Assembly (NCBI GenBank): GCA_002269645.1
Contig: NIVC01002705.1
Coordinates: 1 to 64,000, forward strand
Direction: 5' to 3'
Source: Macrostomum lignano
Lineage: Eukaryota
DNA: 64,000 bases
In this document: positions 12,842-59,222 of the stretch, in pieces
Layout: every line of letters starts with the position of its first letter
Numbering within the stretch: the stretch's first letter is position 1
Program-made: the position numbers and the translations under genes
Notes under the pieces: generated by a model
The model's input: the letters and a program-made list of their open reading frames with translations, nothing else
What the model was told of the DNA's origin: nothing
Databases searched by the model: none

Positions 12842-15800
12842 ATGAATTCACGAGAGCCCTCCGATGTGGGAGGGGCCGAACGGATCGGCTCAGCTCACAG
12901 CCGCCACTCGCGGCCAGTGCGGTCAGCCAAGCGGCCTGCGCTGCACAAACGGCTGACCAAACACTCGGAAATGATAGGAGCGCTCACCGAGTTTGACCCA
13001 TTAGCAGTCTACCTAAAAGTCATGAAAGGCCGTCTGGACGACCTGCCGATCATGAACAGCCGCGTCGTGCGCATCTTCCTGTCGTCCACCTTCTCGGACA
13101 TGGGAACGGAGCGCAACTACCTCATGCAGCACGTCAATCCAAGGCTGAAAAAGTTCTGCCGCGACTCCTTCGGACTCGAGTTTCAAACCATCGACATGCG
13201 ATGGGGAGTCGGTGACGAGGTACAGCTCGACCACCAGGGTCCGTACATGTGCTACCAAGAGATCGACAACTCGCTCATCATGTCAGCCGGCCCCTACTTC
13301 ATCTGTCTGCTGGGTCAGCGCTATGGCAACCAGCCGCCTGCAGCCCTTGTCGAGGTCGACGTTTTCAACAACATCGTGGAAGCGTTGAAGGAGGACGGAC
13401 GCGACGTCTCGTGTCTACACGAGTGGTACACGATCGATGAGAACAACAAGCCACCAATCTGCGTGCTGAGACCGATTGCAACTCTAGCAGAGGCGGTAAG
13501 TGTGATTTTTAACGATTAATGCAGCGCTTGTTTTTCAGAGTTTGCAAAAGGATAAATTTAATAACCTCTAATCTCGTAATTCATTGTTCCAGGCGGACAA
13601 GGAGCTCTTGAAAGCTGCTCGACAGCGGTGGGAAGCTGTCCAAGACTCCATCATCGGACTCATGAAGAGAGGTGCCGAGTTGTGTCTTCAAAAGACTTTG
13701 ATCTCGCACGCGACAATGAAGAAGTTCACGGCGTCTGTCACCGAGATGGAGGTGATCAGCGGAATATTGTCAAAACCTCCGCAAAAGTTGGCTCAGGCTC
13801 TCGCATTCGTGAGAGAATTCTCTGATCTGGAGTCTCAGCGCGACTTCTCTCGAGGAAAGATGTTCAAGTTCATCGACCTGACCGACTCTTTGAACGAAGA
13901 TGGCGAGGCAGTAAAGGTTCTTGATGAAGCTGTGAACGCGATGGTCAAGGAGTTGAACAGACACGTTCTGACTCGAATGGCGGGATCCAATTCCTTCACT
14001 TACTCACTAAAATGGACCAATGACGCTGAGGGTGTGGGCATGAGTAGCCACAAAGACTATCTGGAAAAGTTTGGCAGCGACTACTGCGATAATGTGAAGC
14101 GCCTCGTGGCCGAATCCGTGCGGGAGAGCATGCGGCTCCGATCGGACGACCTCTACTCGGAGGTGCTGCAGCACTCGACTGCATGCGTCAACTACGTGAA
14201 GAAGTTCCAGGGTCGGCAAGAGATCATCGACAAGGTGAAAGCTTATGTGCAAGCGAGCAACACAACGGAGCCTCTGGTGGTGTACGGCGACTCGGGCAGC
14301 GGCAAGACCTCTCTACTTGGCAAGGCCGCCAGTCTGGTGCGAAGCTGGTTGCCAGAGTCCGATTCCAAAGATGCCATCGTGCTGTTGCGATTCCTCGGCA
14401 CCAGTCCCGGTACGTCGAGCATTCGACAGACACTCAAGTATCTGTGCCGTCAGCTCGCTGTGTTCGGCAACGAGGACGACCAGGAAAAGTGCGAGTCACT
14501 CGACGACTTCAAGGAGATCTTGAACACCTTCTACTCCATGCTCGAACGCATGGGCCAGTTCAGGAGAATCTTGGTGTTCCTTGACAGTGTTGATCAGCTG
14601 GACAGCTCTGACGGTGCCTACCATCTGACGTGGGTGCGGACGCCATTGCCTGCCAACGTGAAGATGGTTGTGTCCACTCTGCCCAACATGTTCGATTTGC
14701 TGAAGACATTCAAAGGGAAGCTGCCTAACCCAGACATCTACGTGGAGGTGACGCCACTGGAGACCAGTCTGTGCACCAGCATTTTGTCGGCTCTGCTCAG
14801 CGAACAAGGTCGCACTCTGAACGAGCAGCAATGGGCTCTGGTCGAGCAGGCATTCTCCAAGTGCTCACTGCCAATCTATGTTCACCTGCTGTACCACGAG
14901 GTTCTGAGATGGCGCTCTTACCAACAGGTAGATGAGTCGTCTCTGCGCTACACCGTTCGTCAGGCAATATTTCAGCTGTTCGAGAAACTCGAGTTGAAGC
15001 ACGGCAGGCTTTTTGTAAGTATTTCGTTCGTGTTAGTTACTGTAGCCCAGGCTAGTGAGAATATTCCACAACTATCCACTTATCTACAGTGATTGGATTA
15101 TTCTAGTCAGAATGACTCTCTCTGCTCATTTGTTTTTCCAGACCTCTCACGCCCTGGCATTTATCACTGCATCGAGAAACGGACTGTCAGAGTCGGAGCT
15201 GGAGGATCTGCTCAGTCTGGATGACGCCGTCCTCATTGACGTGTTTCAGCATCACCTGCCGCCCTTCATCCGCATCCCGCCGATCTGCTGGGCTCGACTG
15301 CGTCACGACATTGGCTCTTACCTGGTCGAGAGAGAGGCGGACAACATCCGGGTAGTGTTCTGGTACCACCGACAGTTCATCGAGGTGGCTCAGGAGTACT
15401 TCTTGTCGGACGAAAAGACCAGACGGGACATTCACTCTATCATGGCAGACTACTTCTTGGGTCTGTGGAGCGGCAGGAGAAAGAAGTTCGTGTACCCAGC
15501 CTATCTGCGCAAGAAGCTCGTAAGTGATGAGCACTGAAATTGATCTGTTCTCTGAACCGACTTACTGAGCCGTTCATGCATTCGTTCTCACTCCAGAACC
15601 TGCCCGAGTTCTCAATGGAGGACCGAGCCGTTCCCGAGCAGCCATTCGTGCTCCGCAAAGATGAGGACGGCACTGCTCAGTACAACCTGCGAAAGCTGAA
15701 CGAGCTGCCGTGGCACCTCATCAAGTCCGGTCGAGTGAACGAGTTCTACGACTACATTGTGTTTGACTACGACTTCATGTTCAACAAGCTGAAGGGCACG

Positions 15801-18800
15801 TCTCGGTACCTGCTGCTGAGAGACCTCGACCTCCCGCAGAAGCTCGGTGTCGAGTACATCAAAGAGGCCGAGCTCGTGTACAATGCAATCCGACTCTCCG
15901 CTCAGAGTCTCGTATACGACCCTGTCAATCTGAGCGTTGATCTCATCGGTCGGCTCATCATGTACGAGAAGGACTGTCCTCGAGTGAAGCTGCTGCTCAA
16001 CCAGTGTCGCCAGTCGAAACAGGCTCTCAGCAACTGCTGCCTCATCCCGAAGGTGCAGTGCTTCGACTCCGGGTCTGGAGTTCTCTACTCCAGCTTTGAT
16101 CTCGGACTCGGAATGGGACTGGTCATGCCCAACGGTCAGCTGGTGTCCTTCTCACTCATCAACAACGAAGTCACCTGGTACGACATCGAGGGAAATGAGA
16201 TCAAACGGTTCAGCTCCGACTACAACCTGTTCCTCAGCATGAAGTACATGTCGACTGGATACATCCCAGACGACTGCGTAATGCACGTGCTATCGATGCG
16301 CTCGAAGAATGCCGGTGTCACCGAGGACGACATGCAGGCGCTTGTCCTTAACATGGGTCGGAAGAAGATCCAAGAGGAGATAGAAGAATACGAAGCGTGC
16401 AACAAGGATGTGCCGCAAGAGCTGCGAGACATGATGGAATCGCTCAACGCTGGAGAGATTCCAGACAGCATCATGGAGAAGCTGGACGTAGACGGGATGA
16501 TGAAGAAGATGATATCTGGAGAGGAAGAGGCGCAGAAGTCGCAAGATCTCGTTCGAGTCGACTTCATGAACGGCAGGGTGACGAAACTGATGACTCTGGA
16601 CCCATCATGGAGTGTGTCATCTGATGACGTAGAATATGTGACAAAGGACTATGTGCTTTGTTGCAAGGGAAAGAGTGACTCAACGGGAACAAGCACTCTT
16701 AGACTGCTGTCACTCGGAGAGAAGAAGTTTGTTGCGCTTTATGAAGAAAATACAAGCGGAACGTCAAGAATCGGCACCCAAAACCTCGATAGCAAAAACA
16801 ACTTGCTGTGCTTTGGGATCGAGGCAGGCAGCAACCACTCAACATTGCTCGTGTTCATGAACTTAAACACGAAAGAGATCGTTCGAGGTTCTTTGCCTGA
16901 CATCTTCAAGTCAGCTGACAAAGCGGAACTTGAGTCCATGTGGCGCCACTCACCACTAAAGCAACCTGACAATAAGAAAGAAGAAAAGACACCGGATGAA
17001 AATGACGAGAAGACAAAAGCGGACGAAAGTCCGGCAGCGAGTGAAGCCGACTTGAAATCGAAGACCATCGAGTTACTTCAGCAAGCTGAAGAAGTTTCTG
17101 CTAGCTCCTGTCTCATTGATCATGAGGGAAACATCGTTGCTATTGTAAACGCAACAAAATCTGCTGAAGAAGGCAGTGGGAAGCAAGACAGTACTTTTTT
17201 CGTTACATTCGCCATCTCTGACAGCCTCAAGCCCATTTGTATTGTGGACCTTCAGGAAAGCTTCGATATAAAGTACAGTCAGAATTTCGTAAGCCCAAGT
17301 CGTCGTCGAATGACTTTCCTTCTGAAGAGAAAGTCCAGAGTATACGGTCAAACAAGCGTTCTTCGCGGTCTGTTGTATGACTGTGACGAAAAGCGCGCTG
17401 TTGGGATGACAATATCACCTGAGCAAGACAAGTTCAAAAAGGCTGCATCAAGTTTTGGTGACGGAACGCAGGCTAAATTTACCGAAGACGAGCGATTGCT
17501 AGTTACGTCTGGTTCTAAGGTGCTTCTACTTGTGTGGTCCGTGCAAACTGGCGAACTTTTGGAAGGAATCTCCCTGGGAACGGCCGAAAGCTTTCTTTGT
17601 GGCCAGCCGAAAGGCACGGACTTCTTCACTATCTGCCATTTTCCTGACGAGTCTGCTGGCGACTCTGACGAGCGAATGTTCATCATGACTAAGGTGTACA
17701 ATTTGAAACACTTCACCGACAAGCTTAGTCACCACAGCGAAGAGGATGCACTGCTTCCAATGTATACTCAGTTCAAGCCGTGTAAGAATGCGACAGCGCT
17801 CACCGATTGTCACACGGTTGACATTCGCACTAATGAGGCTCTGATTTCATTGAACACTCGGACACTGGTGGTTAAGAAGTCCTCTTCACGCGACTCGAAA
17901 GAAGACGATCAGGTAGAGACGCTCAGGCTGTCGGATAAACCTCCCATTATTGAGCTTCGCCGCGATCCGAAAGCTCCTTTTTCTGTTGGCATCTCAGTGA
18001 TCAGCAACCAGCTGGTAGAAAAAGTTTTTGGTAGCACATCAAAGGAGGAACTCCTTCAAAGTCGTAAGTCCAAATCAGTTGGAGGGGTCGAGTTCAAATT
18101 TCACGTCGACGCAGAAAACGAATCGAGTGACAAAGAAATGGAACTACAGGCTTCACTGCGTATCTCAAAGAACAACATCTTCGCCCAGACTCCGATTTCG
18201 CATGGATCAAATTCTCTAGAATTAGGATTTCTTGATGAATCTCGACAGTGCTTAATTTCACTTAAGTGCCACGTTCAGTACAGCTTCAAAGAGAGTTTTG
18301 TCTCACTTGTCCATCTCCCCACAATGGAGAGCGTGGTATTCAAGTTTACGAAAAATAATCATCTAGACAGCGGCGATGATAGCTCAGACAGGCTCTCACA
18401 AGATTTTATCGAGCGGTTTTCAGAGGTCATTTATGGCGGCCTAAAGGCGACATCTAAGAAGAAAGGCAGTAAAAAGCAAAAGAGGAAGAAAGACAAGAAG
18501 GAAGAGACGAAGGAGCCTTCCGAAAACCAGGAGACCAAGGAAGAGAATTCAACCGAAACCAAAGGCGATGAAGAAGAGCTGACGGAAGCGGCTAAGAAAG
18601 CGAAGGAAGAAAAGTTTCTAAAAAAGCGATTGAATAATCGCAATGACCTTGTCGACATTCAGTTCCTGCCAGAGAAGTGCACGCTCAACCTGGCCTTCAG
18701 CCAACACCTCAAAGCGTCCGAGGAGATTCGCGTCGGCGTCGGAGTTCCTCCGATTTGGCTCGGCGCGGTTGTGCGCCTCGACTACAGCGACGTGGAGAAA

Positions 18801-20200
18801 GGAACTCCGACCAGCGAGATGCAGTTCCAGCACTCCATCGGCAAAGTGTTCGACATGGGACCCGCAGTGGCCTTCCTCCACGACAACCAGCACCTGGTCA
18901 ACTACAAGCTTCAAATTGTGGACTACATGAAAGGCGAAGTGATCCGCTGTCTCAGCCAGGACGAGGACTTGTACTTTGTTAGACTGCAGGCCACGCCAGA
19001 CTGCAGCCTGCTTGTTAGCCAGGTGTACTTTCCCGCCTACGAGGTGGAGTTCGCCGTATTCGATGACGAATCCATGAACAATTCGGACATGTTCGCAATT
19101 GTTCCGCCTCGAGGCTTGCAGGTGAGATTAGCAACGATTGTTATTGGGAATGGCAAATCTTTTAATGCTTACGCTTATAAGAATCCGATCTAAAGATGCC
19201 TTTTCTCAATGACTGCGTTTAATTTCTGCACTCCAGGTCTATGTAATCAGTGATGGACGCCGCGTTGCAAACTACCTGTTTGAGTCGGATCCTTTCGGAC
19301 TCTGCTTGGTTGGGGAAGATGGTCGGGACCTGCTGGTGCTGACGCATAACGCACCAATCATGCTGTTTGAGCTTCACGACCCGCAACCGCTAGTTGCTGC
19401 TGATGGAGCTGCCCAGATGCACTCGATGAAGGCGATTGATGAAAAGGCGAATACAGACTCGAGTGTCGGTTCGCCGGCGAGAGCACCTGGTCCAAGACCG
19501 GAATACCTGGACATGCTGAGTGAGATTCAAGGGGTTGTTGATTACAACTTAATACGTGGTAGTTAATAGGCGTTATTGCCCTAGATGTATTCCGGAAGGC
19601 TTAATTGAAGTTGGGATTCTTCGCTGAGGGAAGTTACTGATCTTATTTCATCCCAGTGGGATTTTTCAGAATCCTCAAAATTGTGCCTTCAGATTCCTTC
19701 CCACAGTGGTGTCTTCAGGGTCCTTCTCAGAGAATTGGTATCTTCAGGTCCTTCCCACATTGGTGTCCTCAAAGTCATTTCCACAGTGCTGTGTTCAGAG
19801 TCCTCCCTTCCCAAATTGGTGTCCTCAAAGTCCTTCCCACAATGATTTTTTCCGGTTCCTTCTCTCAGAGTATTGTCTTCAGAGTCCTGCTCAGAAAGCG
19901 GTGTCTTCAGCCTCCTGAGAGAGCGGTGTCTTCAGGGTCCTTCCCGAGAGTGGTGTATTCAGATCCTTCTCAGAGTGTGGTGTCTTCAGAGTCCTTTCTA
20001 TAGTGGTGTCTTTAGATTCCTTACCCTACGGAACTCGTTGAGCACTACAAAATTCCCCCCATTTCTTCATTCCAGAGCCAGCACTGGCCAGCTCAATGGC
20101 CGAGGTAGCGAACGCGAGGCCCGTGGACCCGATCGAGTTCCTGGCGCAGTGCCTGCTGCGCTACAAGGCGCAGTGCGACAGCCAGCAGCCAGATATCTGA
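12842..20200 (+). CDS. NWD-type STAND NTPase copy 1 (DUF4062-like + NACHT + degenerate propeller + Dpy-30-like tail), ~2128 aa; exons 12842-13495, 13593-15014, 15142-15519, 15597-19121, 19237-19519, 20076-20200
   Basis: [17 protein letters not shown]...IDMRWGV N-terminal domain as in NWD1/NWD2/TEP1; Walker [10 protein letters not shown]; Walker [12 protein letters not shown]. All splice junctions are GT-AG and keep the frame. Without the last splice the frame stops at 19566. Confidence 0.88.
19690..20030. repeat. Degenerate ~21-bp minisatellite (ggtgtcttcagagtccttc-like) in the last NWD intron; also at ~35865-36050
   Basis: Recurrent ggtgtcttcag/agtccttccc motifs. Confidence 0.7.
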
Positions 20201-21119
20201 TGCTGAATTTCCTTGATGTGACTCGCTGTCTTGAAGCTTACCTGACCGTGCGCCTTGCCTTATTGATTGCACTCTGGTTAAGTTGGTCAAGCTGTCATTA
20301 TAACTTCATTCGAAAATTTGCAATCCATCAAGTCAGACACAGTATGCGAATGAAGATGGCAGATATTGAATTAAATACCGATTTAATGAGAAATTACTTG
20401 ACCTTCACCTATCCGCTTGCCACTTAAATTCAATTTCTGTCGGAGTTGCTAATTTTTTTACCTCTATTTACTCAAACTCTAATCTCCTTTATTTACCACT
20501 CGTGCTCATATTTTACTGCTTATTGGACTCTTTAGCACAGAAAAAAATCCCAGATATTTTTCAGCCCTTTTCTGTACCAAGCTCTTAAAATTATCAAGTG
20601 ACATCACTGCAACCGTTGTGTTTTTTTAGCCTTACCTTATTTTAGAGATTGTTGAAGCAACATTCTGTAACTAGCAATCAACTCAACAGACAGTCTAATA
20701 AAAAATTTAATCTTGCACGATTTTTATCGCATTTTTAACTTTAAACTGTTACTGGATATTTTTTTTATAAATTTGTCTTTTTGTTTACAGTACAAACTAA
20801 GCGATGTGTTCTTGATAGTTCAAGAATTCTCTCCGATTTGCGATAATTTGATCACTGCTGGCACCCGATCTGTCCTGTTTTATCTGTGTTTCCATTATTT
20901 ACTCAAACTAATACAAAGTCAAAGAGACTGCCTTAATACGATATTTTTTGCTGAAAAAGTTAATCTACTTTGATTAACTGGCTTATACTTTCTTTTATAA
21001 AAAATCAAACATTAACCTAAAACAATCACCAGTTCCTGAGAAACTGCTGGTTTGTCATGCAACGAAGTGTTTCTTGATCTGCATGCTTTTGCCCTGTCCG
21101 ACACCTTTTAATAGTTTTT

Positions 21120-21414
21120 ATGGACATGTTCCCCAACTGATGTACATGTTCCTGAGCTGTTGGACATGTCCCCAACTGTTGGACATGCTCCCAAACTGTT
21201 GGACATGTTCCCAAACTGATGTACATGTTCCTGAGCTGTTGGACATGTCCCCAACTGTTGGACATGCTCCCAAACTGTTGGACATGCTCCCCAACTGTTG
21301 GACATGTTCCCCAACTGATGTACATGTTCCTGAGCTGTTGGACATGTCCCCAACTGTTGGACATGCTCCCAAACTGTTGGACATGCTCCCCAACTGTTGG
21401 ACATGTTCCCAAAC
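21120..21414. repeat. 20-bp minisatellite variant array (catgttcccaaactgttgga family)
   Basis: Tandem 19-20-bp units with a recurring variant unit (aactgatgtacatgttcctgagctg). Confidence 0.92.
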
Positions 21415-21765
21415 GCGAGCCTGCTGGGTGACTTGAGGAAGCGGGTGTTGGCCGACACCATATCCTGCCTCTCCAGGAAGTCCTGCAGCGCCTGGGTGTT
21501 GCCGTTCTCGCGGGGCGTCACAAACAGCGACCGCTCGGACCTCCGAGTACGACCACCGTGTCGCGCCGAGCAGTCTCCTCCACGCGCGCAGAGAGCTGCT
21601 CGAAGAAGTCCTGAGCCTCATCTGGGCGGGTGGCAGGTGGCGCGTACACGCAGAACAGGCGAACGTTCCGGCCGCGAAGCCGGACGTCTACCCAAAGCAT
21701 CCGGGGGACAGGGAAGAGCAGCGATAGCTCTGCTGCAGTCTTGGGCCGATCAGTGCTCCAACTCC
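21415..21765 (-). mobile_element. Fragment of a non-LTR retrotransposon APE endonuclease (RTE-like), frameshifted
   Basis: Across frames the minus strand gives GVGALIG..., RMLWVDVRLRGRNVRLFCVYAPP..., VVVLG(D), ENGNTQALQDFLERQDMVSANTRF, matching the APE motifs GVG, YAP, LGDxNA and NxNG..L..NT.F. Confidence 0.75.
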
Positions 21766-21775
21766 TAACGTCCTA

Positions 21776-22222
21776 ATAACAGTTCCCAAACTGTTGGACA
21801 TGTTCCCAAACTGTTGGACATGTTCCCAAACTGTTGGACATGTTCCCAAACTGTTGGACATGTTCCCAAACTGTTGGACATGTTCCCAAACTGTTGGACA
21901 TGTTCCCAAACTGTTGGACATGTTCCCAAACTGTTGGACATGTTCCCAAACTGTTGGACATGTTCCCAAACTGTTGGACATGTTCCCAAACTGTTGGACA
22001 TGTTCCCAAACTGTTGGACATGTTCTTAAACTGTTGGACATGTTCCCAAACTGTTGGACATGTTCCCAAACTGTTGGACATGTTCCCAAACTGTTAGACA
22101 TGTTCCCAAACTGTTGGACATGTTCTTAAACTGTTGGACATGTTCCCAAACTGTTAGACATGTTCCCAAACTGTTAGACATGTTCCCAAACTGTTAGACA
22201 TGTTCCCAAACTGTTGAAAATG
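21776..22222. repeat. 20-bp minisatellite (catgttcccaaactgttgga), about 22 copies
   Basis: Near-perfect tandem array. Confidence 0.97.
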
Positions 22223-22555: not shown

Positions 22556-25500
22556 TCAGGCAGTCGCGGTCTCGCGGTAGAGACTGCACAGCCGGTCGCA
22601 CTGGGCAGGGGCACCAGCGCGCTTGCCAGTTTGCCCGGACTGAGGTTTAGCTGTCCAGGAAACCGGACGCAGGCAGTCAGGCCCAGCATCATGGATTCCG
22701 GGTACAACTGCAGCCTCCGGAGGTTGAGAATAGTATCGCCAGTGTAGACATAGCGGAGGAGTTCCCAGCGGTTTTCAGTGGCCTAATCGGACTCTGCAAA
22801 GGGGCGGTGCACAAGCCGAGAGTAAATGCAGCTGTGCTACCAGTGCAGCAGCCGCTGCGCCGCCTTCCCCTCGCAAAGCAACAGAAAATAGGCAATGAAC
22901 TTGACCGCAAGGAGAACTTGACCGCATTGAACGAATAAACTCCAGCCCATGGATATCCAACATGGTTGTCGCAAACAAGAAAGACGGCAACATTCGAATC
23001 TGCATCGACGTGCGAGAGCTGAATAAGTCGCTTGTAATCGATCGACATCCGATGCCTCAGCTGGACGAGATTTCGGCAAAGATCAAGGCAGCAAGTGGCC
23101 GCGTATTTTCAAAGATCGATCTCAAAGCTGGCTACATGCAGTTGGATGAGGCATCGCGTGACTTGACAGCATTCATCACGCACCAGGGGTTGTATCGGTA
23201 TTGCAGAGTGCCTTTCGGCTTAGCGTCAGCGCCAGCAGCCTTCCAAAGGATGTTGGACGACTTAGTAGCCGGACTTCACGGGGTCGAACATATTCTGGAC
23301 GATTTTTTTGTTTTCGGAGCAAACATGACTGAACATGATTCAAGACTGCGAGCGCTATTAGGGCGTATGAACGACGCTGGCCTAACGGCCAATAAGGACA
23401 AATGCCTGCTACGCAAGACGGAGGTAGAATTTTTCGGCTTCATCTTCTCAGCCGACGGTATGCGAACTTCAGAGTCCCAGACCAAGGCATTCAGCCAGTT
23501 GCGCTCACCGTCTAACCGGAATTGGAGCTGCAGGCGTTCCTAGGATCTGCAAACTACCTGATACGCTTTGTACCCAATTTTGCTGAAGTCACAGCGCCTC
23601 TGAGGGCCCTACTGAAGGGGGATGCGGAGTTCGAGTGGTCGACGGACTGCGAAAGAGCGTTCCAAGAGCTAAAAGCAGCAATCTGTAATCCACCAATCCT
23701 GGCGCACTTTGACCCAGAGGCTGAGACGATTGTCACCAGCGACGCCAGTGCGGAGTCTCTCGGTGCAAACCTGTCCCAGATCCAAGACGGCGTCGAGCGT
23801 CCAATCGCCTTTGCCGCCCGAGCCTTGACCGACACCGAGAAGCGATACGCTGAAAATGAGCGGGAGGCATTGGCCAGTCTGTGGGCCATGGAGAAGTGGC
23901 ACTACTACCTATATGGGCGTCACTTTGAGCTGCGAACAGACCATCAAGCGGTACGTCAACTACTGTTGGGACCCAGCGGCACGGGACATCGGCCGCTGCG
24001 CATCCATGGCTGGTGTGACAGATTTAAACAGTACGATTTCCACGTAAAATATCCGCCAGGCAATCGGAACTTCGTGGCCGACATGTTGTCAATGTGGAGC
24101 TGTGGGTCGGACATGAATATCGTACAGCTACCGGACACTGCGATGCCTCGAGTCCGAGTAGTAACACCTACCCAGCTAGCGACAGCCACGGCCGAGGACA
24201 CGGTTCTGCGCGAGGTGATTAAGCGAGTGACTAGCGGCAACTGGGGCTCAACGAAGGACACAGAGTTGCACCCGTTCTTCAAAGTCAGAGAGCACCTCAG
24301 CGTTTGGCAGGATGGCACATTGCCTGGCTTTCCAAGAGCGAGCAGTTATTCCACATCAGCTGCGGCGTAACCTACTGGAATCGGCGCACACCGGACATCC
24401 GGGTGTGGTTCGCACTAAGCAGCAGCTCCGCGAGTTTGCCTGGTGGCCAAAGATGGACTTCGACGTCGAAACGTTTGTCAGAAACTGCAGTGCCTGCGAG
24501 ACCGCAGAAAAGAATTTCAAATTGCGACCGGCTCCTCTGCAGCCTCTGCGGTGGCCAGATAGGCCGTGGACACAGATCGCCATCGACATCGTGGGTGAGC
24601 TACAGGCAGCACCAGCATCGTCACGATTCCTTTTGGTCATTACGGATCTGCATAGTAAATGGCCGGAAGTATTTGCAACGTTAAACATCACCACCGAGAC
24701 GATCTGCAAAGTGTTACGCAGCCTGTTCGCTCGCTGGGGTCTCTGTAAGACGGTGCTCACGGACAACGGACCGCAGTTCGGCAATGCGCTCACGGGGTTC
24801 CTGCGGGAGCGCGGCATCCAGCATCAGAAGACCAGCCCGTACCGTCCGAGCACGAATGGCCAGACGGAGAGACTCAACCGGACTCTGGTAGACAGCATAC
24901 GAGCGGCCAGGGCAGAGAATGTCCCAATGAAAGACGCGCTGTTGCAATTCCTTGTGACCTACCGCAGTACGCCGCACGCCCTGACTGGCAAGAGTCCAGC
25001 GGAGCTGATGCTAAGAAGACGTTGGCGCACTGCACTGTCTCTACTGGCCCGTTTAAGGACACCACGGCGGCACAACCAGATTTCGCCCAGCGAATTTAGG
25101 AGAGACAGCAGCGAACGGCAGCTTATACCGACCGGCGGCGGGGGGTGCGACCACCAACATTGTGCGCCGGTGACTGGGTTCGAGTGCATCGTCCAGTTCG
25201 AAAGGGAAAGCTGGGGACGCGGCTTTCTGGACCACTACAGATCGTCAAGACAACGAACACCGTGTGTAGACTAACGGACGGCAGCACCTGGAATCAGCAG
25301 GCGCTTGTACCAACGTCTTTGCGGCCGAATTCTGAGCCACCAGGGCCAAACGAGCTTGACCCCCCTCGTGGACATTCAAAGGCAACAACCTGCACAATGC
25401 GGCGGAGAGACCAACGTTCAAATACTAGGACCAGCCTCGGGACCTGCGAATCCACCGCTGAGACGTTCGAACCGTCAGTGGCGACCGGTGCAACGTTACG

Positions 25501-37031: not shown

Positions 37032-37780
37032 CAGTTCCCAAACTGTTGGACATGTTCCAAAACTGTTGGACATGTTCCAAAACTGTTGGACATGTTCCCA
37101 AACTGTTAGACATGTTCCCAAACTGTTAGACATGTTCCCAAACTGTTAGACATGTTCCCAAACTGTTAGACATGTTCCCAAACTGTTAGACATGTTCCCA
37201 AACTGTTAGACATGTTCCCAAACTGTTAGACATGTTCCCAAACTGTTGGACATGTTCCCAAACTGTTGGACATGTTCCCAAACTTTTGAAGATATCCCCA
37301 AATTGTTGTAAATGTTCGCCAGCTGTTAGACATGTTCCCAAACTGTTAGACATGTTCCTAAACTGTTAGACATGTTCCTGAACTGTTGTACGTGTTCCCA
37401 AACTGTTAGACATGTCCCCAAACTGTTAGACATGCTCTCCAACTGTTGGACATGTTCCCAAACTGCTGATAGACATGTTCCCAAACTGTTAGACATGTTC
37501 CCAAACTGTTAGACATGTTCCCAAACTGTTAGACATGTTCCCAAACTGTTGGACATGTTCCCAAACTTTTGAAGATATCCCCAAATTGTTGTAAATGTTC
37601 GCCAGCTGTTAGACATGTTCCCAAACTGTTAGACATGTTCCTAAACTGTTAGACATGTTCCTGAACTGTTGTACGTGTTCCCAAACTGTTAGACATGTCC
37701 CCAAACTGTTAGACATGCTCTCCAACTGTTGGACATGTTCCCAAACTGCTGTTAGACATGTTCCCAAACTGTTGGAAATG
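37032..37780. repeat. 20-bp minisatellite (catgttcccaaactgttaga/gga) with a ~285-bp higher-order duplication
   Basis: Tandem 20-mers; the variant block aacttttgaagatatccccaaattgttgtaaatgttcgcc occurs at ~37281 and ~37565. Confidence 0.95.
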
Positions 37781-38116
37781 TCCTCTCACTCATAAAGATG
37801 TCTTTGGTTCTGTTGATAGTTCTCCCCATTGGTAAAGATGCTCCTTAAGTGCCCATTGGACAAGTCATTAGACAAGTTCACGTTATTCAGCAGCTCTTTT
37901 CCTGGCAAGACCACCAGTATTGTCAAATAAAAGACTAAACGCGGAGAAAACAGTTTGAAAATTGAAAAAGAAACGAATGGAGCGTTTCGCTCTCTGCTTT
38001 GAGCCGTCTATTGTTTTACTCCAGATGACGCTTTGCATCCAAATTTACCCAACTCAGCCAGACTTTTTTAGTTTTCATACCCTGTTTTAAACAAAATTAT
38101 GCGCTGGGTGCGCGGC

Positions 38117-40169: not shown

Positions 40170-40565
40170 TTTAGAAAATCTGTTTCTAGGAATCAGAAAG
40201 TCTGTTTCTAGGAATCAGAAAGGCTGTTTCAAGGAATCAGAAAGTCTGTTTTTAGGAATCAGAAAATCTGTTTCTAGGAATCAGAAAGACTGTTTCTAGG
40301 AATCAGAAAGTCTGTTTCTAGGAATCCTAAAGTCTGTTTCTAGGAATCAGAAAGTCTGTTTCTAGGAATCAGAAAGACTGTTTCTAGGAATCAGAAAGTC
40401 TGTTTTTAGGAATCAGAAAGTCTGTTTCTAGGAATCAGAAAGGCTGTTTCTAGGAATTAGAAAGTCTGTTTTTAGGAATCAGAAAGACTGTTTCTAGGAA
40501 TCAGAAAGGCTGTTTCTAGGAATTAGAAAGTCTGTTTCTAGGAATTAGAAAGTCTGTTTTTAGGT
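40170..40565. repeat. 22-bp minisatellite (ggaatcagaaagtctgtttcta)
   Basis: About 17 tandem units upstream of the coiled-coil gene. Confidence 0.95.
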
Positions 40566-46879: not shown

Positions 46880-47367
46880 CCTTCATTGTTCCTTCATCGG
46901 TGGATACGAATAATTAGGCGCAGGGGTTACAAAGGTTAGAAATCTTCAGAGACAGTCTTCTCGTAGCAAAAAGTTTTTATCTATCGAATTTCGAAAATAA
47001 ACTTGATAAAAATTAAGTTCGCTTTAATTTTTTTCGTCATTCACGCGCAGAACATTCTACTGTAGCCAGTAGTAGCTTTGAAACAAGTCCGCTGGGTCGG
47101 AGCTTGTCCGGGAATGGGGGCACCGTCTTCTAGATAGCTGTCATGTGCATTCACGCGTTACAGTTGTGCACCGCTTAGTAAGCACCTGTGGTGCTGTTCA
47201 CTTTCATACTTTACTCTCGCGAACTTCGTTTTTTATAGTTCATGTTATTGACGTTTTTCAGCAACCAAATATAGTTCATAAAGGTTAAGATTGATTTAAT
47301 ATTTTGGCGTATACATGTATTTCTCTGTCAGACTCCTAAGCATCACTCTGTATGTATGTCTCACTTG

Positions 47368-48700
47368 GTCACTCTGTAAGACTCTCTCAGTCACTCTGTA
47401 TGACTCTCTCAGTCACTCTGTATGACTCTCTCAGTCACTCTGTATGACTCTCTCAGTCACTCTGTAAGACTCATTTGGTTACTCTGTATGACTCTCTCAG
47501 TCACTCTGTATGACTCTCTCAGTCACTCTGTATGGCTCTCTCAGTCACTCTGTATGACTCTCTCAGTCACTCTGTATGGCTCTCTCAGTCACTCTGTATG
47601 ACTCTCTCAGTCACTCTGTATGGCTCTCTCAGTCACTCTCAGTCACTCTGTATGACTCTCTCAGTCACTCTGTAAGACTCATTTGGTTACTCTGTATGAC
47701 TCTCTCAGTCACTCTGTATGACTCTCTCAGTCACTCTGTATGACTCTCTCAGTCACTCTGTATGACTCTCTCAGTCACTCTGTATGACTCTCTCAGTCAC
47801 TCTGTATGACTCTCTCAGTCACTCTGTATGACTCTCTCAGTCACTCTGTATGACTCTCTCAGTCACTCTGTATGACTCTCTCAGTCACTCTGTATGACTC
47901 TCTCAGTCACTCTGTAAGACTCATTTGGTTACTCTGTATGACTCTCTCAGTCACTCTGTATGACTCTCTCAGTCACTCTGTATGACTCTCTCAGTCACTC
48001 TGTAAGACTCACTTGGTCACTCTGTATGACTCTCTGAGTCACACAGTTTCACTCTCTCAGTCACTCTGTATGACTCCTCAGTCACTCTCAGTCACTCTGT
48101 ATGACTCTCTCAGTTACTCTGAATGACTCTCTCAGTCACTCTGTAAGACTCACTTGGTCACTCTGCATGAGTCTCTCAGTCACTCTGCATGAGTCTCTCA
48201 GTCACTCTGTATGACTCTCTCAGTCACTCTGTAAGACTCACTTGGTCACTCTCTATGACTCTCTCAGTCACTCTGCTTCACTCTCTCAGTCACACTGTTT
48301 CACTCTCTCAGTCACTCTGCATGACTCACTTGGTCACTCTGTATGACTCTCTCAGTCACTCTGCATGACTCACTTGGTCACTCTGTATGACTCTCTCAGT
48401 CACTCTGCATGACTCACTTGGTCACTCTGTATGACTCTCTCAGTCACTCTGCATGACTCTCTCAGTCACTCTGCTTCACTCTCTCAGTCACACTGTTTCA
48501 CTCTCTCAGTCACTCTGCATGACTCACTTGGTCACTCTCTATGAATCTCTCAGTCACTCTGCTTCACTCTCTCAGTCACACTGTTTCACTCTCTCAGTCA
48601 CTCTGCATGACTCACTTGGTCACTCTCTATGAATCTCTCAGTCACTCTGCTTCACTCTCTCAATCACTCTGTTTCACTCTCTCAGTCACTCTGTTTCACT
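47368..48700. repeat. 22-bp minisatellite (ctctcagtcactctgtatgact) with interspersed variant units
   Basis: ~1.3-kb array that becomes more degenerate at the right end. Confidence 0.96.
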
Positions 48701-49297
48701 CCCTTGAGTCACTCTGTTTGATACTCAACTCGAAAAATATCAGATGAAACTGTTCTGATTCGATGAAAAGTCAAACAAACAGCGACACTTGTTGAGCAGC
48801 AGGCCCACAGTGTTCTCAATGAAGATTGCAATACGAAAGGCAAGAAGTGTTGGAGACCAGCAGAGCAGGCCAGGGGACAATTCTGATCCCATCTCAGCAC
48901 CGAGAGCAACAGAGATCATATGGGCAGAATGAACTGCAGCTGGCTCTAAATTAGGCATCAGATCAAAAACGCTCAGGGCAGGCTCTGTCTCTCTCTCTCT
49001 CTCTCTCTCTCTTTCTCCACTATTAGAAAAAACTCAGAGCAATACGATTGTCTAATCTGCAATACTTCTGCAGCCGGTCCAATTCTAAAAAATGTAAGCT
49101 GCAATTTGCGTCGCTTTTGGATCGATGGAGAGGGTCCAGCATCCCGTGGCTCTGGACAGAGGGGCGGAAACCGGGGCGGGCGATGGCTGGGGTTGGAAGG
49201 GGGATAGAGATGCAGCAGTCAGTCCGCGGCTAAGCGTATTAAAGCAGCGATTTCTACCTGAGACCTAGGCAACAAGAGTTGTCTGAAGCAGAGGAAC

Positions 49298-49699: not shown

Positions 49700-49737
49700 A
49701 GCTTAGACTGCACCGCGTGTGAGTTTTTCTGCAGTGT

Positions 49738-50160
49738 AAACTACCGACTACCTAGTGTAGAATACCAAATACTAGGGTAAACTACCGACTAGCTAGTGTA
49801 GAATACCAAATACTAGGGTAAACTACCAACTAGCTAGTGTATAATACCAAATACTAGGGTAAACTACCGACTAGCTAATGTAAAATACCAAATACTAGGG
49901 TAAACTACCGACTAGCTAGTGTATAATACCAAATACTAGGGTAAACTACCGACTAGCTAATGTAAAATACCAAATACTAGGGTAAACTACCGACTAGCTA
50001 GTGTAGAATACCAAATACTAGGGTAAACTACCGACTAGCTAGTGTAGAATACCAAATACTAGGGTAAACTACCGATTAGCTAGTGTAGAATACCAAATAC
50101 TAGGGTAAACTACCGATTAGCTAGTGTAGAATACCAAATACTAGGGTAGACTACCGATTA
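49738..50160. repeat. 41-bp minisatellite (aaactaccgactagctagtgtagaataccaaatactagggt)
   Basis: About 10 tandem units. Confidence 0.96.
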
Positions 50161-51044
50161 GGGATGCCTACTTCGATGACGGTAGTAAATAGCTTTTAGA
50201 CAATAAAATACATTTGCGTACTACTTAAGATGTGTACATCCTGGCTATTGGAATCAGTCGTGCCGCAGATTGTGGATAAATTACACTTGATATTAAGACA
50301 CTCATATCTAATATTTTTAAAGCAGTCTACTTGAATATTTACAACATCTTTTGCGCGCATATTCCAATATTTAAGGCAAAGCTTTATTGAACTTTTGAAG
50401 CTATTTAAAACTATCATTAGAATAGAGCTAGTATATTGCTGGGCACGCCTACTTTTCTATCTATACTCTGTCGATAGGAAGATATTCATTGATATCCATA
50501 TAGAAAATGTCAATTTATCTTACTCTGGGATACCTGCCAACTCCAACATGTACTGCCTAGATGTCTTCCCTCTCAGATCCTGTTTCCTGACTTTGGCGGC
50601 AAGTTTTACTATACTGCTACTGTAATCCATTCTTCTCTTTGTCTCCGTTTGCTGTGATGTTGTACTATCTGTATGCTTTGAGACCTCTCCATTTTTGCTG
50701 TATTTTTGCAATTAATGATAAATATAAATGCTTACGTACCAAGCAGACATTTAAAAGCGAGTAATTCTGATGTTATTCGATAGTAATTTAGCAATTTAGT
50801 AATTTAGTAGTTTGATAGTAATGCGGCTTTGTTCTGCGCATATGAAGTGTCCTGCCAACTGGGGTCTTGCAGACAGTGCAACAGGTCGCTTGGACAGGTC
50901 AGGCCAGAGTCTATCGAATGAGCCAAGATCTATTGGCCATTGTCTACATGTATGTTCCTTGCTTCAATGTCTATTTATGGTCTACAACCTGTGCTCTATG
51001 GTCCAGGGTCTATAGGCTACGGTCTATATGTTCCCCCACCGGTT

Positions 51045-51740
51045 CAAGGTCCATGAGCTACGGTCTATGTTCCATGGTTCAAGGTCTATAAGCTACGGTC
51101 TATGTTCCATGGTTCAAGGTCTATAAGCTACGGTCTATGGTCCTTGGTCCAAGGTCTATAAGCTACGGCCTGTGTTTCATGGTTCAAGGTCCATGAGCTA
51201 CGGCCTGTTTTCCATGGTTCAAGTTCCATGAGCTACGGCCTGTTTTCCATGGTTTAAGGTCCATGAGCTACGGCCTGTTTTCCATGGTTCAAGGTCCATG
51301 AGCTATGGCCTGTGTTCCATGGTTCAAGGTCCATGAGCTACGGCCTGTGTTCCATGGTTCAAGGTCCATAAGATAGGGTCTGTGTTCCAAGGTTTAAGGT
51401 CCATGAGCTACGGCCTGTTTTCCATGGTTCAAGTTCCATGAGCTACGGCCTGTGTTCCATGGTTTAAGGTCCATGAGCTACGGCCTGTGTTCCATGGTTC
51501 AAGGTCCATGAGCTACGGCCTGTGTTCCATGGTTTAAGGTCCATGAGCTAGGGTTTGTGTTCCATGGTTCAAGGTCCATGAGCTACGGCCTGTGTTCCAT
51601 GGTTCAAGGTCCATGAGCTAGGGTCTGTGTTCCATGGTTCAAGGTCCATGAGCTACGGCCTGTGTTCCATGGTTCAAGGTCCATGAGCTACGGCCTGTGT
51701 TCCATGGTTCAAGGTCCATGAGCTACGGTCTCTGTTCCAT
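51045..51740. repeat. 35-bp minisatellite (gctacggcctgtgttccatggttcaaggtccatga)
   Basis: About 20 tandem units. Confidence 0.96.
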
Positions 51741-52617
51741 GGTCTATGGCCCACTGGACTCTGTCTATGTTCCTTAGTCCATAGTCCATGGTCTGTGATC
51801 TACCGGTCAATGATGAAATGTGTTGGTCTGTCGTCTATGGTAAGTGATCTGTGCACATGATATGAGTATTAGCCTCGTACATGGCTCATGGTCGATGATA
51901 ATAGTTAAAAATCCAGATAATCACAATTAAGTCGAAACTGAGATTAGGATGCAAATTGCAAAGCCAGTCTTTCATAAATATCGCTACAGTGTGTTCTATA
52001 AGGCTAAATGGACGCGCCAAGCTTATGGAAGGGACCGTTGACAGTGCAAGGCCTGCAATCTTTGGGTTGGGAGGCTTATTGACTGAGACAGAGAGAATAT
52101 ACAAACACAAGCAGGCACGCGCAGGGTGAAGGAAGTACTAGGTAAAAGAAGGCATTGGCTAAGATCTAAACAAGCAAGACATCGCCGAGTGTCTCTGGCA
52201 TCTAAGTAGCGTTAGATCCAAGCTAAGTAAGCGGCAACAAGGCAGAGGGCAGCCTCTGCAACGTCGGAATCACGGCTCCCATGGCTGTGTTTGCTCAGGC
52301 TTTTTACAGGTATTATTGGCCTGTCGGCTCTGTCAGCTGAAATAAAATCTGAAGCCCTTTCGGCGTCAAGAATCCGAGGCGAAACATGGCTTTTTTTATG
52401 CGCAAAGTTCTCTACTAATAGTACTGCCGAAAAATCATTATGTTTCAAGCATTGAACAAACCGATTAAGATAGTCATGAAGAAGGTCCTGAAGAGGCAAG
52501 ACAAAACTACGCTCGTAAATATAATAAATGGTTGGATAAAAATAGTCAAACAATTTTTTCTGCCAAAACAATTGCATTAACGAAAAGTTTGAAATTGTTT
52601 AAACAAAGCAATTCATG

Positions 52618-55600
52618 TCAGAGGCAGGTACAGCATCGGCGGGGTTGCGATTCCGTCGCATGGGACTCAGTTTTTGACGAATCAGGGGTCGACAGCTCAG
52701 ATGAGGTTGAGCCGGGAGAGTTTGATTCAGTTGGGTCAAGCAGCTCAAACAGCATAATGGGCGCATTGTGCGTGAGAACCAGAAGGTCCCGCCCGGCCTC
52801 ACCGATCAGGCAGAAGCCAACGGGGTCTGACTCAAACAGGTAGTTAGCAACGCGACAACCGTCTGATATACGGTACACCTGAGCAAGATCGGGCAATGAG
52901 GTGCAAAACTGTGAAGATCCGAACTCTACACCAGTATCCGGAATTATAAGTAGTAAAAACTACAAATTTACTAAATCTCACTTGCAAGCCTCGAGGTGGA
53001 ATAACTGCGAACATGTCCGAATTGTTCATGGATTCGTCATCGAATACGGCGAACTCCACCTCGTAGGCGGGAAAGTACACCTGGCCAACAAGCAGGCTGC
53101 AGTCTGGGGTGGCCTGTAGTCTGACAAAGTAGTGGCCTGTAGTCTGACAAAGTACAAGTCCTCGTCCTGGCTGAGACAGCGGATCACTTCGCCTTTCATG
53201 TAGTCCACAATCTGAAGCTTGTAGTTGACCAGGTGCTGGTTGTCGTGGAGGAAGGCCACTGCGGGTCCCATGTCGAACACTTTGCCGATGGAGTGCTGGA
53301 ACTGCATCTCGCTGGTCGGATTTCCTTTCTCCACGTCGCTGTAGTCGAGGCGCACAACCGCGCCGAGCCAAATCGGAGGAACTCCGACGCCGACGCGAAT
53401 CTCCTCGGACGCTTTGAGGTGTTGGCTGAAGGCCAGGTTGAGCGTGCACTTCTCTGGCAGGAACTGAATGTCGACGAGGTCGTTTCTTTTTGACATCCGC
53501 TTGTTAATGAAGTCCGCTATCATTTCTTGTCGGTTTTGACTTGTAAAGTCCTGCCGCGTTTCCAAATTTCCATCCTCTGCTTCATCGGCACGACTGGTAG
53601 CTTCAGATGGAAATATTATGTGGTTAAATTTTTTCATGAAGCTTTTTGATAGTACTTTGTCAAAAGAGTCAGTACTTAGTCCAAATTGGTCGCTCAAATC
53701 GGAAAGATTGTACCTGCACCCTCTGAGAGTTGTGAGTCTGATGACTGATAAATAGCTCTCTTTAATGTCCTGCAGTGTAAGCCTAATTGTAATTAGCAAC
53801 TTCTTCGCTTCGTTTATAAAGACAATGTCTAGTATGTTGTCTTCAGACAAAATCGGCGATTGAAGGAACTTGGTATTCATCATATTAGCTTTTGCTGTCG
53901 TCTGAAGGGCGCAGCGTTGCTGTTCCCTTGTGGGATCCTCATTGGGATGCTCTGAAGCAACAGTAAATCGAACTCCAAATACATCTTTGCTCTCATTCTT
54001 AGACTTCGGTTGTTCGTCATTGGCACCGAATAACGACTCAATCAGATCAGAATCGCGTATAACAATCGTCGTGACCTCTCTTTGTCCGGGTCGGCAACGA
54101 ACTTCAATTTGGGGCTTAGTGGAAAGGACGCACTTTTCTTCATCTTGATCAAGCGTATTCGAAGACTTTTCGCGAATGTTTATACTAATTGTCTCCTTAC
54201 CTATGATATCGACTTCGTATTTGTTAGTTAGCGATACAGCGCAACGTGCTTGCCTTCTCTGGGTAAATTTTGGAAGCATGACGGCAGACTCCTCTCTAAT
54301 TGACGCATCGTGAAATGACTTAGTGTTGTACACCTTAGCCATGATGTACATTCGCTCGTCAGTGTCACCGGCCGACTCATCGGGAAAATGGCAGATGGTA
54401 AAAAAATCGGTACCCCTTGGCTGACCGGATAAAAAACTCTCAGCCGATCCCATTCGAATGCCTCTGATGAGTTCACCTGATTCAACTGACCAAACTAGAA
54501 GCAGAAATTTAGTGCCAGAAGTAAATAGGAGCTTTTCATCTTCCGTAAATTTTGCTTGAGTTCCGTCACCAAATGCCGAAACTGCAGATTTAAACTCGCT
54601 GTTTGCCTGAGTAATCCTCAGTGGAGTCGCCTTTCGCGCTGCAACATCGAATATGACTCCCCGAATTGGTTCCTGTTGCGCGTCAGTCAATTTGGCTCGC
54701 TTTTTCAAAAGAAAGGCTAGCCTCTCTCTGGAGGCGCTTGCAAAGTTTTGCGAATATTTCACTTCGAGAACAGTATTCAAATCTATTATGTGAACAGGTT
54801 TGAGAGACCCACAAGTAGAAAAAACGACGAAAAACGTTCGCGACTCAACATCTCTATTATTAGTCTCTCCAGTGGCAGTTATCATTGCGACAATATCTCC
54901 TTTGGGGCCAAAAAGGCAAGCATTTGCTCGAATTTTTTCGGCACTTAATAGTAGATTTAAAGAGCTCGAGTTGTCCGACACAGCTTTTGCAGAGCTTGAC
55001 CATGAGTCCATGCGCCACATACGTTTAAGATCAGCTTTGTCCATGGACTGGAAATTTTCAGAAAAATATAACCGAGAAGTCACTCTAGTCACCAAATTCA
55101 TAACCACCAACAATGAAGACGCCTTATCATTTATCTCCAAACAGAAGCACAACAGATTGCTTTTGCCGTCGAGGTTTTGGGTGCCAATATTTGAAGTTCC
55201 ACTTGTCTCTTCGTCATAAAGAGTAACGAACTTCTTCTCTCCGAGTGACAGCAGTCTAAGAGTGCTTGTTCCCATTGAGTCACTCTTTCCCTTGCAACAA
55301 AGCACATAGTCCTTTGTCACATATTCTACGTCATCAGATGACACACTCCATGATGGGTCCAGAGTCATCAGTTTCGTCACCCTGCCGTTCATGAAGTCGA
55401 CTCGAACGAGATCTTGCGACTTCTGCGCCTCTTCCTCTCCAGATATCATCTTCTTCATCATCCCGTCTACGTCCAGCTTCTCCTTGATGCTGTCTGGAAT
55501 CTCTCCAGCGTTGAGCGATTCCATCATGTCTCGCAGCTCTTGCGGCACATCCTTGTTGCACGCTTCGTATTCTTCGATCTCTTCTTGGATCTTCTTCCGA

Positions 55601-58600: not shown

Positions 58601-59222
58601 TGGCTGGTTGCCATAGCGCTGACCCAGCAGACAGATGAAGTAGGGGCCGGCAGACATGATGAGCGAGTTGTCGATCTCTTGGTAGCACATGTACGGACCC
58701 TGGTGGTCGAGCTGTACCTCGTCACCGACTCCCCATCGCATGTCGATGGTTTGAAACTCGAGTCCGAAGGAGTCACGGCAGAACTTTTTCAGCCTTGGAT
58801 TGACGTGCTGCATGAGGTAGTTGCGCTCCGTTCCCATGTCCGAGAAGGTGGACGACAGGAAGATGCGCACGACGCGGCTGTTCATGATCGGCAGGTCGTC
58901 CAGACGGCCTTTCAGTACATGTCGGTACAGAATAGAGCTAGATGGTCCTTGTTTACCAACTTGTTTTTCTTTGGCCGAATGAAATGGTTTTAAAAGCCAT
59001 TTTCCTTTTTTCGAAGCCTCTGAACATACAATTTCAGAACCTTTCGATGTGCGTGACGATTTACTTGTACTAGATGATGAATCTGAAGATGCACTTGTTG
59101 AAGAGCTGGTATCAGACAGCACAATGGCATCTATTGGGCTGGCTGTCTAGAGTGGGGGATTATTTTGGTAGTTATACATGTATGCACACTTTGCAGCTAT
59201 ATCATTTCGATATACTAACCAT
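52618..59222 (-). CDS. NWD-type STAND NTPase copy 3 (inverted, chimeric); exons 59222-59220 (candidate ATG-only), 59146-58442, 58344-56923, 56810-56433, 56361-52982, 52878-52618; 23-bp duplication frameshifts exon 5
   Basis: Same motifs and intron positions as copy 1. It has a unique Ser-rich N-terminus, a diverged central segment (~55230-53480) and a unique tail ending RRCCTCL-stop. Confidence 0.85.

Follow-up and report, generated by a model that had tools for sequence, protein, structure and literature searches.

Patchy gene conversion as the probable origin of a mosaic NWD-type STAND gene in the flatworm Macrostomum lignano

How does a gene come to be nearly identical to its neighbors along part of its length and anciently diverged from them along the rest? 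The question is raised by 64,000 nucleotides of the Macrostomum lignano genome (GenBank assembly GCA_002269645.1, contig NIVC01002705.1, positions 1 to 64,000; hereafter "the window"), where self-BLASTN and repeat finding located three copies of an NWD1/2-like STAND gene. Two copies are arranged in tandem with a period of ∼15.28 kb, and the third is an inverted mosaic. An earlier interpretation made from the letters alone (the "sequence-only reading") had proposed that these paralogues share a homogenized nucleoside triphosphatase (NTPase) chassis and exchange central propeller cassettes. The results described below indicate that the chassis is what moved. Copy 3 is probably an old sister paralogue that was partly overwritten by patchy interlocus gene conversion, and not the recipient of an imported cassette.

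Gene Copies and Homogenized Tracts

The copies were modeled as follows.

12842-20200, plus strand: copy 1, an intact gene of six exons encoding 2128 residues in a single open frame
∼28097-36226, plus strand: copy 2, a tandem duplicate of copy 1
59303-52618, minus strand: copy 3, an inverted mosaic paralogue
12842-13495, 13593-15014, 15142-15519, 15597-19121, 19237-19519 and 20076-20200, plus strand: exons of the copy 1 gene model
59303-59301 (ATG only), 59146-58442, 58344-56923, 56810-56433, 56361-52982 and 52878-52618, minus strand: putative exons of copy 3

Extents obtained by self-BLASTN and repeat finding were 12810-∼20318 (plus) for copy 1, 28097-∼36347 (plus) for copy 2 and 58914-52974 (minus) for copy 3. 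The introns of copy 1 measure 97, 127, 77, 115 and 556 nt, all have GT-AG ends, and the last splice agrees with the public models P0001 and P0003. Copy 3 also keeps the four internal introns of copy 1, and its N-terminal exon and tail differ. The ATG mini-exon of copy 3 and the 154-nt intron that would follow it are proposed from sequence.

Mosaic structure was delimited by self-BLASTN, repeat finding and a three-way MAFFT alignment, which together define two homogenized tracts and an intervening unconverted one.

13023-16729 (copy 1, plus), 28311-32009 (copy 2, plus) and 58914-55229 (copy 3, minus): tract A, homogenized, comprising the TeTIR domain, NACHT, winged helix, helical domain, the first ∼3 propeller blades and introns 1-3
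16730-18640 (copy 1, plus), 32010-33788 (copy 2, plus) and 55228-53486 (copy 3, minus): central propeller tract (the "cassette"), unconverted
18641-19128 (copy 1, plus), 33789-34276 (copy 2, plus) and 53485-52975 (copy 3, minus): tract C, homogenized, from the end of exon 4 to ∼13 nt inside intron 4

In self-BLASTN, positions 58914-55145 of copy 3 are 97.5% identical to 13023-16813 of copy 1. Within tract A, copy 3 matches copies 1 and 2 at 95-100% per 100-nt window, except around introns 2 and 3, and differences turn dense from position 16730 of copy 1 (55228 of copy 3). The central tract is only patchily alignable between copies 1 and 3 as DNA (BLASTN identity 72-74% over ∼250 nt). The reading frame is open throughout the cassette in both copies (581 codons in copy 3). 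Near-identity is back at 18641 (53485 of copy 3) and ends at ∼19128 (∼52975). Beyond these limits the N-terminal exon, last intron, exon 5, tail and both flanks of copy 3 have diverged from copies 1 and 2; intron 4 and both flanks are unalignable. The sequence-only reading had described near-identity from ∼58914 to ∼55230, an abrupt switch to ∼1.75 kb of old paralogous sequence, a return to near-identity with renewed divergence in the last intron and tail, and differing N-termini, all of which the alignment bears out. Its statement that three introns are nearly identical is correct for introns 1 and 3; intron 2 keeps a diverged patch. It made no mention of the 23-nt duplication or the missing Dpy-30 exon of copy 3, the five 1-nt deletions of copy 2, the finer patchwork within the identical tracts or the low identity (72-80%) of the flanks of copies 1 and 2.

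The tracts differ sharply when copies 1 and 3 are compared at the codon level. In tract A, synonymous divergence (dS) is 0.029, nonsynonymous divergence (dN) is 0.004 and amino acid identity is 99% (1136 codons); in tract C, dS is 0.082 and identity is 97.5% (160 codons). The cassette has only 43% amino acid identity over 573 codons, with 75-77% in its core blades, and the proportions of synonymous and nonsynonymous differences (pS and pN) are 0.83, which is saturated, and 0.40. In the conserved part of exon 5, pS is likewise saturated at 0.83 with 86% amino acid identity. Because exon 5 is saturated even though it is strongly constrained, it is the near-identical tracts that are anomalous, and not the cassette. 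The low dS of tracts A and C against saturation elsewhere is far beyond chance. Differential constraint without conversion was ruled out as an explanation, since synonymous sites and introns are homogenized as well.

Patchwork of Shared Variants

Variants in tract A are shared in patches. At its 92 informative sites, the identity of the odd-one-out copy changes in such a way that 39 runs are formed, where 60.9 are expected (P<1e-5; none of 100,000 shuffles reached the observed value). Copies 1 and 3 have the same intron 1, and the intron 2 sequence of copy 3 is found in neither of the others. Intron 3 occurs as two haplotypes, one in copies 2 and 3 and another in copy 1 and L001, the Mlig_3_7 contig that matches this locus; these differ at ∼18% of sites. 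Since the introns have different sharing partners, several independent exchange events are required. The claim that the NTPase chassis has been homogenized between tandem and inverted paralogues is thus upheld both by the low dS of tract A and by this patchwork.

Copies 1 and 2 have a similar history. They are 97.7% identical between 12810-18439 and 28097-33716 and again between 18564-19685 and 33712-34839, whereas their flanks are collinear yet only 72-80% identical (11700-12841 versus 26950-28129, and 20201-21100 versus 36227-37100). Because the flanks are so diverged and the gene bodies, including introns, so similar, the tandem pair must be much older than its gene sequences suggest. The possibility that copies 1 and 2 are falsely duplicated haplotypes was rejected on the same collinear but diverged flanks.

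Probable Gene Conversion of an Old Paralogue

We consider it probable that these patterns arose by patchy interlocus gene conversion. Under this explanation, copy 3 would be an old paralogue, sister to the lineage of copies 1 and 2, and repeated, short, non-reciprocal recombination between inverted and tandem copies would have overwritten two stretches of it. The first stretch (3.7 kb) would run from the sequence for the TIR-like domain, through those for the NACHT NTPase, winged helix and helical domain, to the first blades of the propeller; the second (0.49 kb) would encode a conserved portion of the final propeller. The propeller middle, which evolves fast, would have been too diverged to pair, as would the termini and the flanks, such that conversion tracts would halt at their edges and leave a mosaic. 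The same process would have homogenized copies 1 and 2 over the full length of the transcription unit. Tract boundaries would then be set by divergence-limited pairing, and not by selection for two types of sensor.

Relationships among paralogues were compared tract by tract using identity matrices that also included M. lignano proteins P0004, P0005, P0007 and P0009, two trematode proteins and the outgroup P0122. Copy 3 is nearest to the copy-1 type in every tract, followed by P0004; the topology is congruent and only depth varies. Separate trees for the tracts had been proposed as a test in the expectation of incongruence, which the matrices do not reveal. For the copy 3 cassette, identity falls from 43% (copy-1 type) to 26-28% (P0004) and 19-20% (P0122); the corresponding values for exon 5 are 86% (copy-1 type) and 59-61% (P0004).

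A mirror-image history would produce the same mosaic within the gene. Copy 3 would be a recent duplicate of copy 1 or 2 that had acquired its N-terminus, cassette and tail through conversion by an old paralogue, unseen and located elsewhere in the genome. In favor of this history, the copy 3 cassette is still open and constrained (pN 0.40 against saturated pS, with core blades at 75-77% amino acid identity). However, three replacement tracts would be needed, two of which run indefinitely into the flanks, and this amounts to placing copy 3 at the old paralogue's locus. In addition, no such donor was seen in the window or among public proteins. We regard this as the least probable of the histories considered. 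Because everything outside the two near-identical tracts is old, the copy 3 locus is taken to be that of the old paralogue, with its core overwritten.

A protein-level mosaic of like form was observed in a second NWD subfamily of M. lignano (locus L002). P0005 and P0007 are 60-75% identical over residues 1-180, 90-100% identical over 181-440 and 501-840, 0-50% identical in the propeller middle and 90-95% identical over 1874-1934. The L002 contig ends at the gene, and no neighboring paralogue is present on it.

Reading Frames and Assembly Quality

Only copy 1 is intact as assembled. Copy 2, in its assembled form, resembles a pseudogene: its alignment to copy 1 and L001 revealed five frame-breaking 1-nt deletions in its exons (at 29885, 31098, 32352, 32368 and 33489) and a 129-nt in-frame deletion at 33716, and L001 is without any of these indels. 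The ATG of copy 1 is CAG in copy 2, where the start context GCATGAAT of copy 1 (12839-12844) is replaced by TCCAGAAT (28126-28131), which resembles a splice acceptor. Judging from these letters, translation of copy 2 would need an upstream exon or would begin at the internal methionine of KVMKGRL.

In copy 3, a frame-breaking duplication was identified in the three-way alignment.

53109-53154, minus strand: 23-nt tandem duplication (TACTTTGTCAGACTACAGGCCAC twice), private to copy 3 and located inside tract C

This duplication shifts the frame, resulting in a stop at 53026 and a product of 1947 residues as assembled. When the Dpy-30 exons were used as TBLASTN queries, matches were found in copies 1 and 2 only, and no Dpy-30 exon was found for copy 3. 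Because the cassette is open over its 581 codons despite saturated divergence, any inactivation of copy 3 must be recent, or else an assembly error.

Assembly error could in principle also account for the mosaic itself, if copy 3 were a uniformly diverged paralogue or pseudogene whose identical tracts came from mis-joined or mis-polished reads of the commoner copy-1-type genes. M. lignano is a neopolyploid with three subgenomes that differ by ∼2% in single-nucleotide polymorphisms, and 36% of the Mlig_3_7 length lies in chimeric scaffolds (PMC10733133). The sole public contig found for the locus, NIVC01004056.1 (L001), is collinear with positions 49-26499 of the window and ends just before copy 2, so that copies 2 and 3 rest on one assembly. 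Moreover, public protein sets contain no copy-3-type protein, and both the 23-nt duplication and the 1-nt deletions of copy 2 could be errors of assembly. Misassembly is nevertheless difficult to reconcile with four clean boundaries across which the frame and all splice sites are preserved. Copy 3 also has private substitutions inside tract A, and it equals copy 1 in intron 1 and copy 2 in intron 3. Finally, if copy 3 were anciently diverged throughout, reads could not have been mis-mapped to its introns, and yet introns 1 and 3 are homogenized and intron 2 is not. For these reasons we consider an artefact very unlikely.

Domain Composition

The spliced product of copy 1 has its best matches in the M. 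lignano proteins A0A1I8HEY0, A0A1I8HIM4 and BOX15_Mlig021732g1 (95-98% identity), as expected for the flatworm origin that had been suggested without knowledge of the source. Other M. lignano paralogues follow at 42-46% and trematode proteins at ∼40%; animal NWD2-like and NWD1-like proteins are 30-38% identical over the N-terminal half. No relevant literature was found on M. lignano NACHT genes, Smp_145280 or Mlig021732.

The domains of copy 1 are, in order, DUF4062/TeTIR, NACHT, an NWD1-type winged helix, a helical domain, beta-propellers and a Dpy-30 motif. Pfam matches for DUF4062, NACHT and the winged helix agree with the initial identification of an NWD-like gene.

13070-13339, plus strand: DUF4062/TeTIR core, residues 77-166 of copy 1 (Pfam PF13271, E 2.4e-8, above its cut-off), with the IDMRWGV loop
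14271-14801, plus strand: NACHT, residues 445-621 of copy 1 (PF05729, E 3.6e-9; AAA_16, E 1e-10), with Walker A motif GDSGSGKTS
20076-20200 (copy 1) and 36102-36226 (copy 2), plus strand: Dpy-30 motif exon (Pfam PF05186, 34.4 bits versus a cut-off of 22)

The winged helix follows NACHT at residues 674-783 (PF25469, E 1.3e-10). DUF4062/TeTIR lies directly upstream of NACHT, as it does in NWD1/2-like TeTIR-NACHT-WD STAND proteins. The TIR-like domain of human TEP1 (PDB chain 11gz_A) matches the DUF4062 region of copy 1 with E 5.9e-10; IDMRWGV of copy 1 aligns with IDLRWGV of TEP1, and SVTEMEV, encoded in exon 2, aligns with the identical TEP1 motif, that of the catalytic glutamate. Either of the two glutamates in this motif is a candidate counterpart of TEP1 E1008. 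DUF4062 (equivalent to TeTIR) is described as a TIR-like NADase fold common to TEP1, NWD1, NWD2 and NPHP3, of which only TEP1 had clear activity in vitro, full-length human NWD1 and NWD2 being inactive (bioRxiv 10.64898/2026.09.21.753143; 10.64898/2026.05.01.722283). By analogy, the protein may be an Apaf-1/TEP1-like switch wherein the propellers would sense, NACHT would oligomerize and the TIR-like domain would act as effector.

Among the listed homologues, the dimerization/docking motif of PF05186 occurs in M. lignano proteins only (P0001, P0003 and P0006-P0009); a similar-looking sequence to the Dpy-30 tail is present at the C-terminus of Paragonimus P0012. The TeTIR and NWD literature examined contained no mention of an architecture combining TIR-like, NACHT, propeller and Dpy-30 parts.

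Propeller Structure and Breakpoints

The copy 1 product gave no Pfam WD40 match, and neither version of the cassette gave any Pfam match. Structure was modeled with AlphaFold2 for copy 1 exon 4, using 44 aligned sequences (mean predicted local distance difference test score 67.8, predicted template modeling score 0.63). In the model, a helical domain precedes ∼51 beta strands, which are grouped in fours and interrupted by three long low-confidence inserts; the long inserts of the flatworm propellers are acidic or lysine-rich. Every top match in a Foldseek search of the PDB is a WD40 or other beta-propeller protein, including full-length Apaf-1 (3sfz), and in an exhaustive HMMER scan generic WD40 proteins matched one canonical repeat in the copy 3 cassette (FGDGTQAKF...LLLVWS). 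Modeling thus supports the beta-propeller that had been proposed for the C-terminal region. In the model, the cassette corresponds to exon-4 residues 380-1015, with ∼31 predicted strands and three long disordered or helical inserts. The 5′ breakpoint coincides with the final strand of a predicted blade, where confidence in the model is low, and the 3′ breakpoint with the first strand to follow a disordered, lysine-rich insert and a helix. Whether the breakpoints fall on blade boundaries had been posed as a check. They do fit modular edges, but they are equally the points at which sequence conservation changes.

Proposed Exchange of Cassettes

These breakpoints bear on the proposal that active exchange of propeller cassettes, among paralogues with a common NTPase chassis, diversifies ligand specificity for innate immunity or allorecognition. 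The architecture does resemble an immune STAND receptor, with a TIR-like DUF4062/TeTIR domain, NACHT and beta-propellers (bioRxiv 10.64898/2026.09.21.753143; 10.64898/2026.05.01.722283). The variable part is the presumed sensor, its limits lie near predicted module edges, and the P0005/P0007 pair has the same mosaic at the protein level. However, the window holds only two types of cassette, which are each other's closest relatives. An exhaustive HMMER search of 1.84 billion representative proteins retrieved no third cassette or donor, and no protein more similar to the copy 3 cassette than the copy-1 type, which is 49% identical where the two can be aligned. A copy-1-type cassette is what each of the public M. 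lignano models P0001-3 and L001 contains, and the family in this species consists of ∼5-6 lineages, which is not a large repertoire.

The flanks, termini and last intron of copy 3 are as old as its cassette. With old parts surrounding the cassette, congruent topologies and only two cassette types, the notion that cassettes are swapped is not supported. Propeller-coding DNA also lacks internal repeats that could shuffle: no direct repeats of at least 40 nt were found in it in copy 1 or copy 3. An adaptive signal in the cassette, which had been put forward as a further test, was not found when dN/dS was calculated per tract. Among the recently diverged copy-1-type genes (copy 1, copy 2 and L001), dN/dS is higher in the cassette (0.22-0.30) than in tract A (0.09-0.14); both are under purifying selection, which is weaker in the cassette. 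In addition, the frames of copies 2 and 3 are broken as assembled, full-length human NWD1 and NWD2 showed no NADase activity in vitro, and NWD1 is reported to be without a known immune role. Receptor diversification by cassette exchange, with the role in immunity or allorecognition that was argued from analogy, is accordingly judged highly improbable.

A broader version of the idea is that free-living flatworms keep a small, clustered STAND family of TIR-like, NACHT, propeller and Dpy-30 composition, wherein conversion keeps the core interchangeable and selection preserves alternative sensors. This is a long shot. If true, the family would be an invertebrate counterpart of fish NLR-B30.2 and plant NLR clusters with an NADase-type effector, and P0005/P0007 would be a second instance.

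Several considerations weigh against gene conversion limited by divergence, which we still regard as the probable explanation. The breakpoints, as located in the predicted structure, fit modular edges, and a modular boundary maintained by selection is possible. The converted tracts have a higher G+C content at third codon positions (0.72-0.75) than the cassette (0.42-0.51); this contrast fits GC-biased conversion, although it is not decisive and could be explained by the codon bias of conserved domains. All three copies are approximately equidistant in tract A, such that transfer may have run in either direction. Lastly, the conversion events are deduced from a single assembly.

Other Features of the Window

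Much of the 16 kb from copy 2 to copy 3 is occupied by long tandem arrays with periods of 16-42 nt, each up to 1.4 kb, and the 20-nt array downstream of copy 1 is common to copy 2. Pfam scans of the other open reading frames (ORFs) in the window gave nothing besides the retroelement pol, tubulin and DUF4517 matches listed here.

22962-25274, plus strand: Ty3/gypsy-type pol fragment between copies 1 and 2, with reverse transcriptase, RNase H and integrase in consecutive frame-shifted ORFs; also in Mlig_3_7 contig L001
6769-11736: ∼5 kb AT-rich block (∼31% GC), absent from the otherwise collinear L001, with ORFs that have no Pfam matches
38941-39669, minus strand: isolated ORF between copies 2 and 3 that matches the tubulin GTPase domain (E 1.3e-23) and is probably a fragment of a gene or a single tubulin exon
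61271-61735, minus strand: ORF with a DUF4517 match (E 4.3e-14), just beyond the 5′ end of copy 3
2297-2676, 21121-22216, 37034-37781, 40173-40564, 41676-42556, 43789-44061, 45861-46750, 47353-48721, 49736-50161 and 51041-51743: tandem arrays

The AT-rich block may represent an insertion/deletion difference between subgenomes or between assemblies.

Comparison with Known Systems

Both the process and the protein family are known, and the locus adds a small new instance. In the closest precedent, the zebrafish NLR-B30.2 (NLR-C) genes, NACHT exons and sensor exons are affected differently by conversion, and homogenization passes over parts of the genes (Howe et al. 2016, PMC4852459). As in M. 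lignano, NACHT paralogues are clustered and partially homogenized, NACHT is uniform, the C-terminal recognition region has its own history, and synonymous divergence differs sharply between domains (PMC4852459). The zebrafish system, however, comprises hundreds of genes, dN/dS is high in B30.2, and conversion also spreads B30.2 variants (PMC4852459), whereas the M. lignano locus has three copies, two sensor versions, a dN/dS of 0.22-0.30 and two broken frames. Furthermore, its sensor is a beta-propeller and its effector would be the TIR-like DUF4062 domain.

The HNWD/NWD genes of the fungus Podospora anserina (Paoletti et al. 2007, PMC1805685) also combine NACHT with WD repeats and exchange sequence between paralogues. 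There, highly similar WD40 repeats shuffle, evolve in concert and are hypervariable under positive selection (PMC1805685); the M. lignano blades lack mutual similarity at the DNA level, and the propeller middle is the very part that escapes exchange.

Animal NWD1, NWD2 and TEP1 and C. elegans QUI-1 (PMC8871372) have the same series of DUF4062/TeTIR, NACHT, NWD1-type winged helix, helical domain and WD40-type propellers, and the RWG loop and SVTEMEV are conserved in M. lignano. Non-flatworm NWD2-like proteins among the matches listed are 35-38% identical over the N-terminal 45%. Compared with these proteins, the flatworm propellers are very divergent, have no Pfam WD40 match and carry long acidic or lysine-rich inserts. 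A C-terminal Dpy-30 motif is found in none of the non-flatworm matches listed, and the M. lignano gene has multiplied. Apaf-1 is likewise a STAND NTPase with a helical domain and tandem beta-propellers, but it has NB-ARC instead of NACHT and a CARD instead of a TIR-like effector, and it is single-copy with no mosaic.

Implications

Two of the three copies may be pseudogenes. For the family, the DUF4062/TeTIR domain, as a TIR-like NADase fold, offers a plausible biochemical handle, and the C-terminal Dpy-30 docking motif is previously undescribed. As a small, clean case of concerted evolution confined to certain domains of an animal STAND gene, the locus illustrates that the pattern of a conserved chassis with a variable sensor can arise passively, when conversion acts only where paralogues pair. 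It follows from such a history that trees based on NACHT badly underestimate the age of paralogues in M. lignano, which matters for annotation of this neopolyploid genome.

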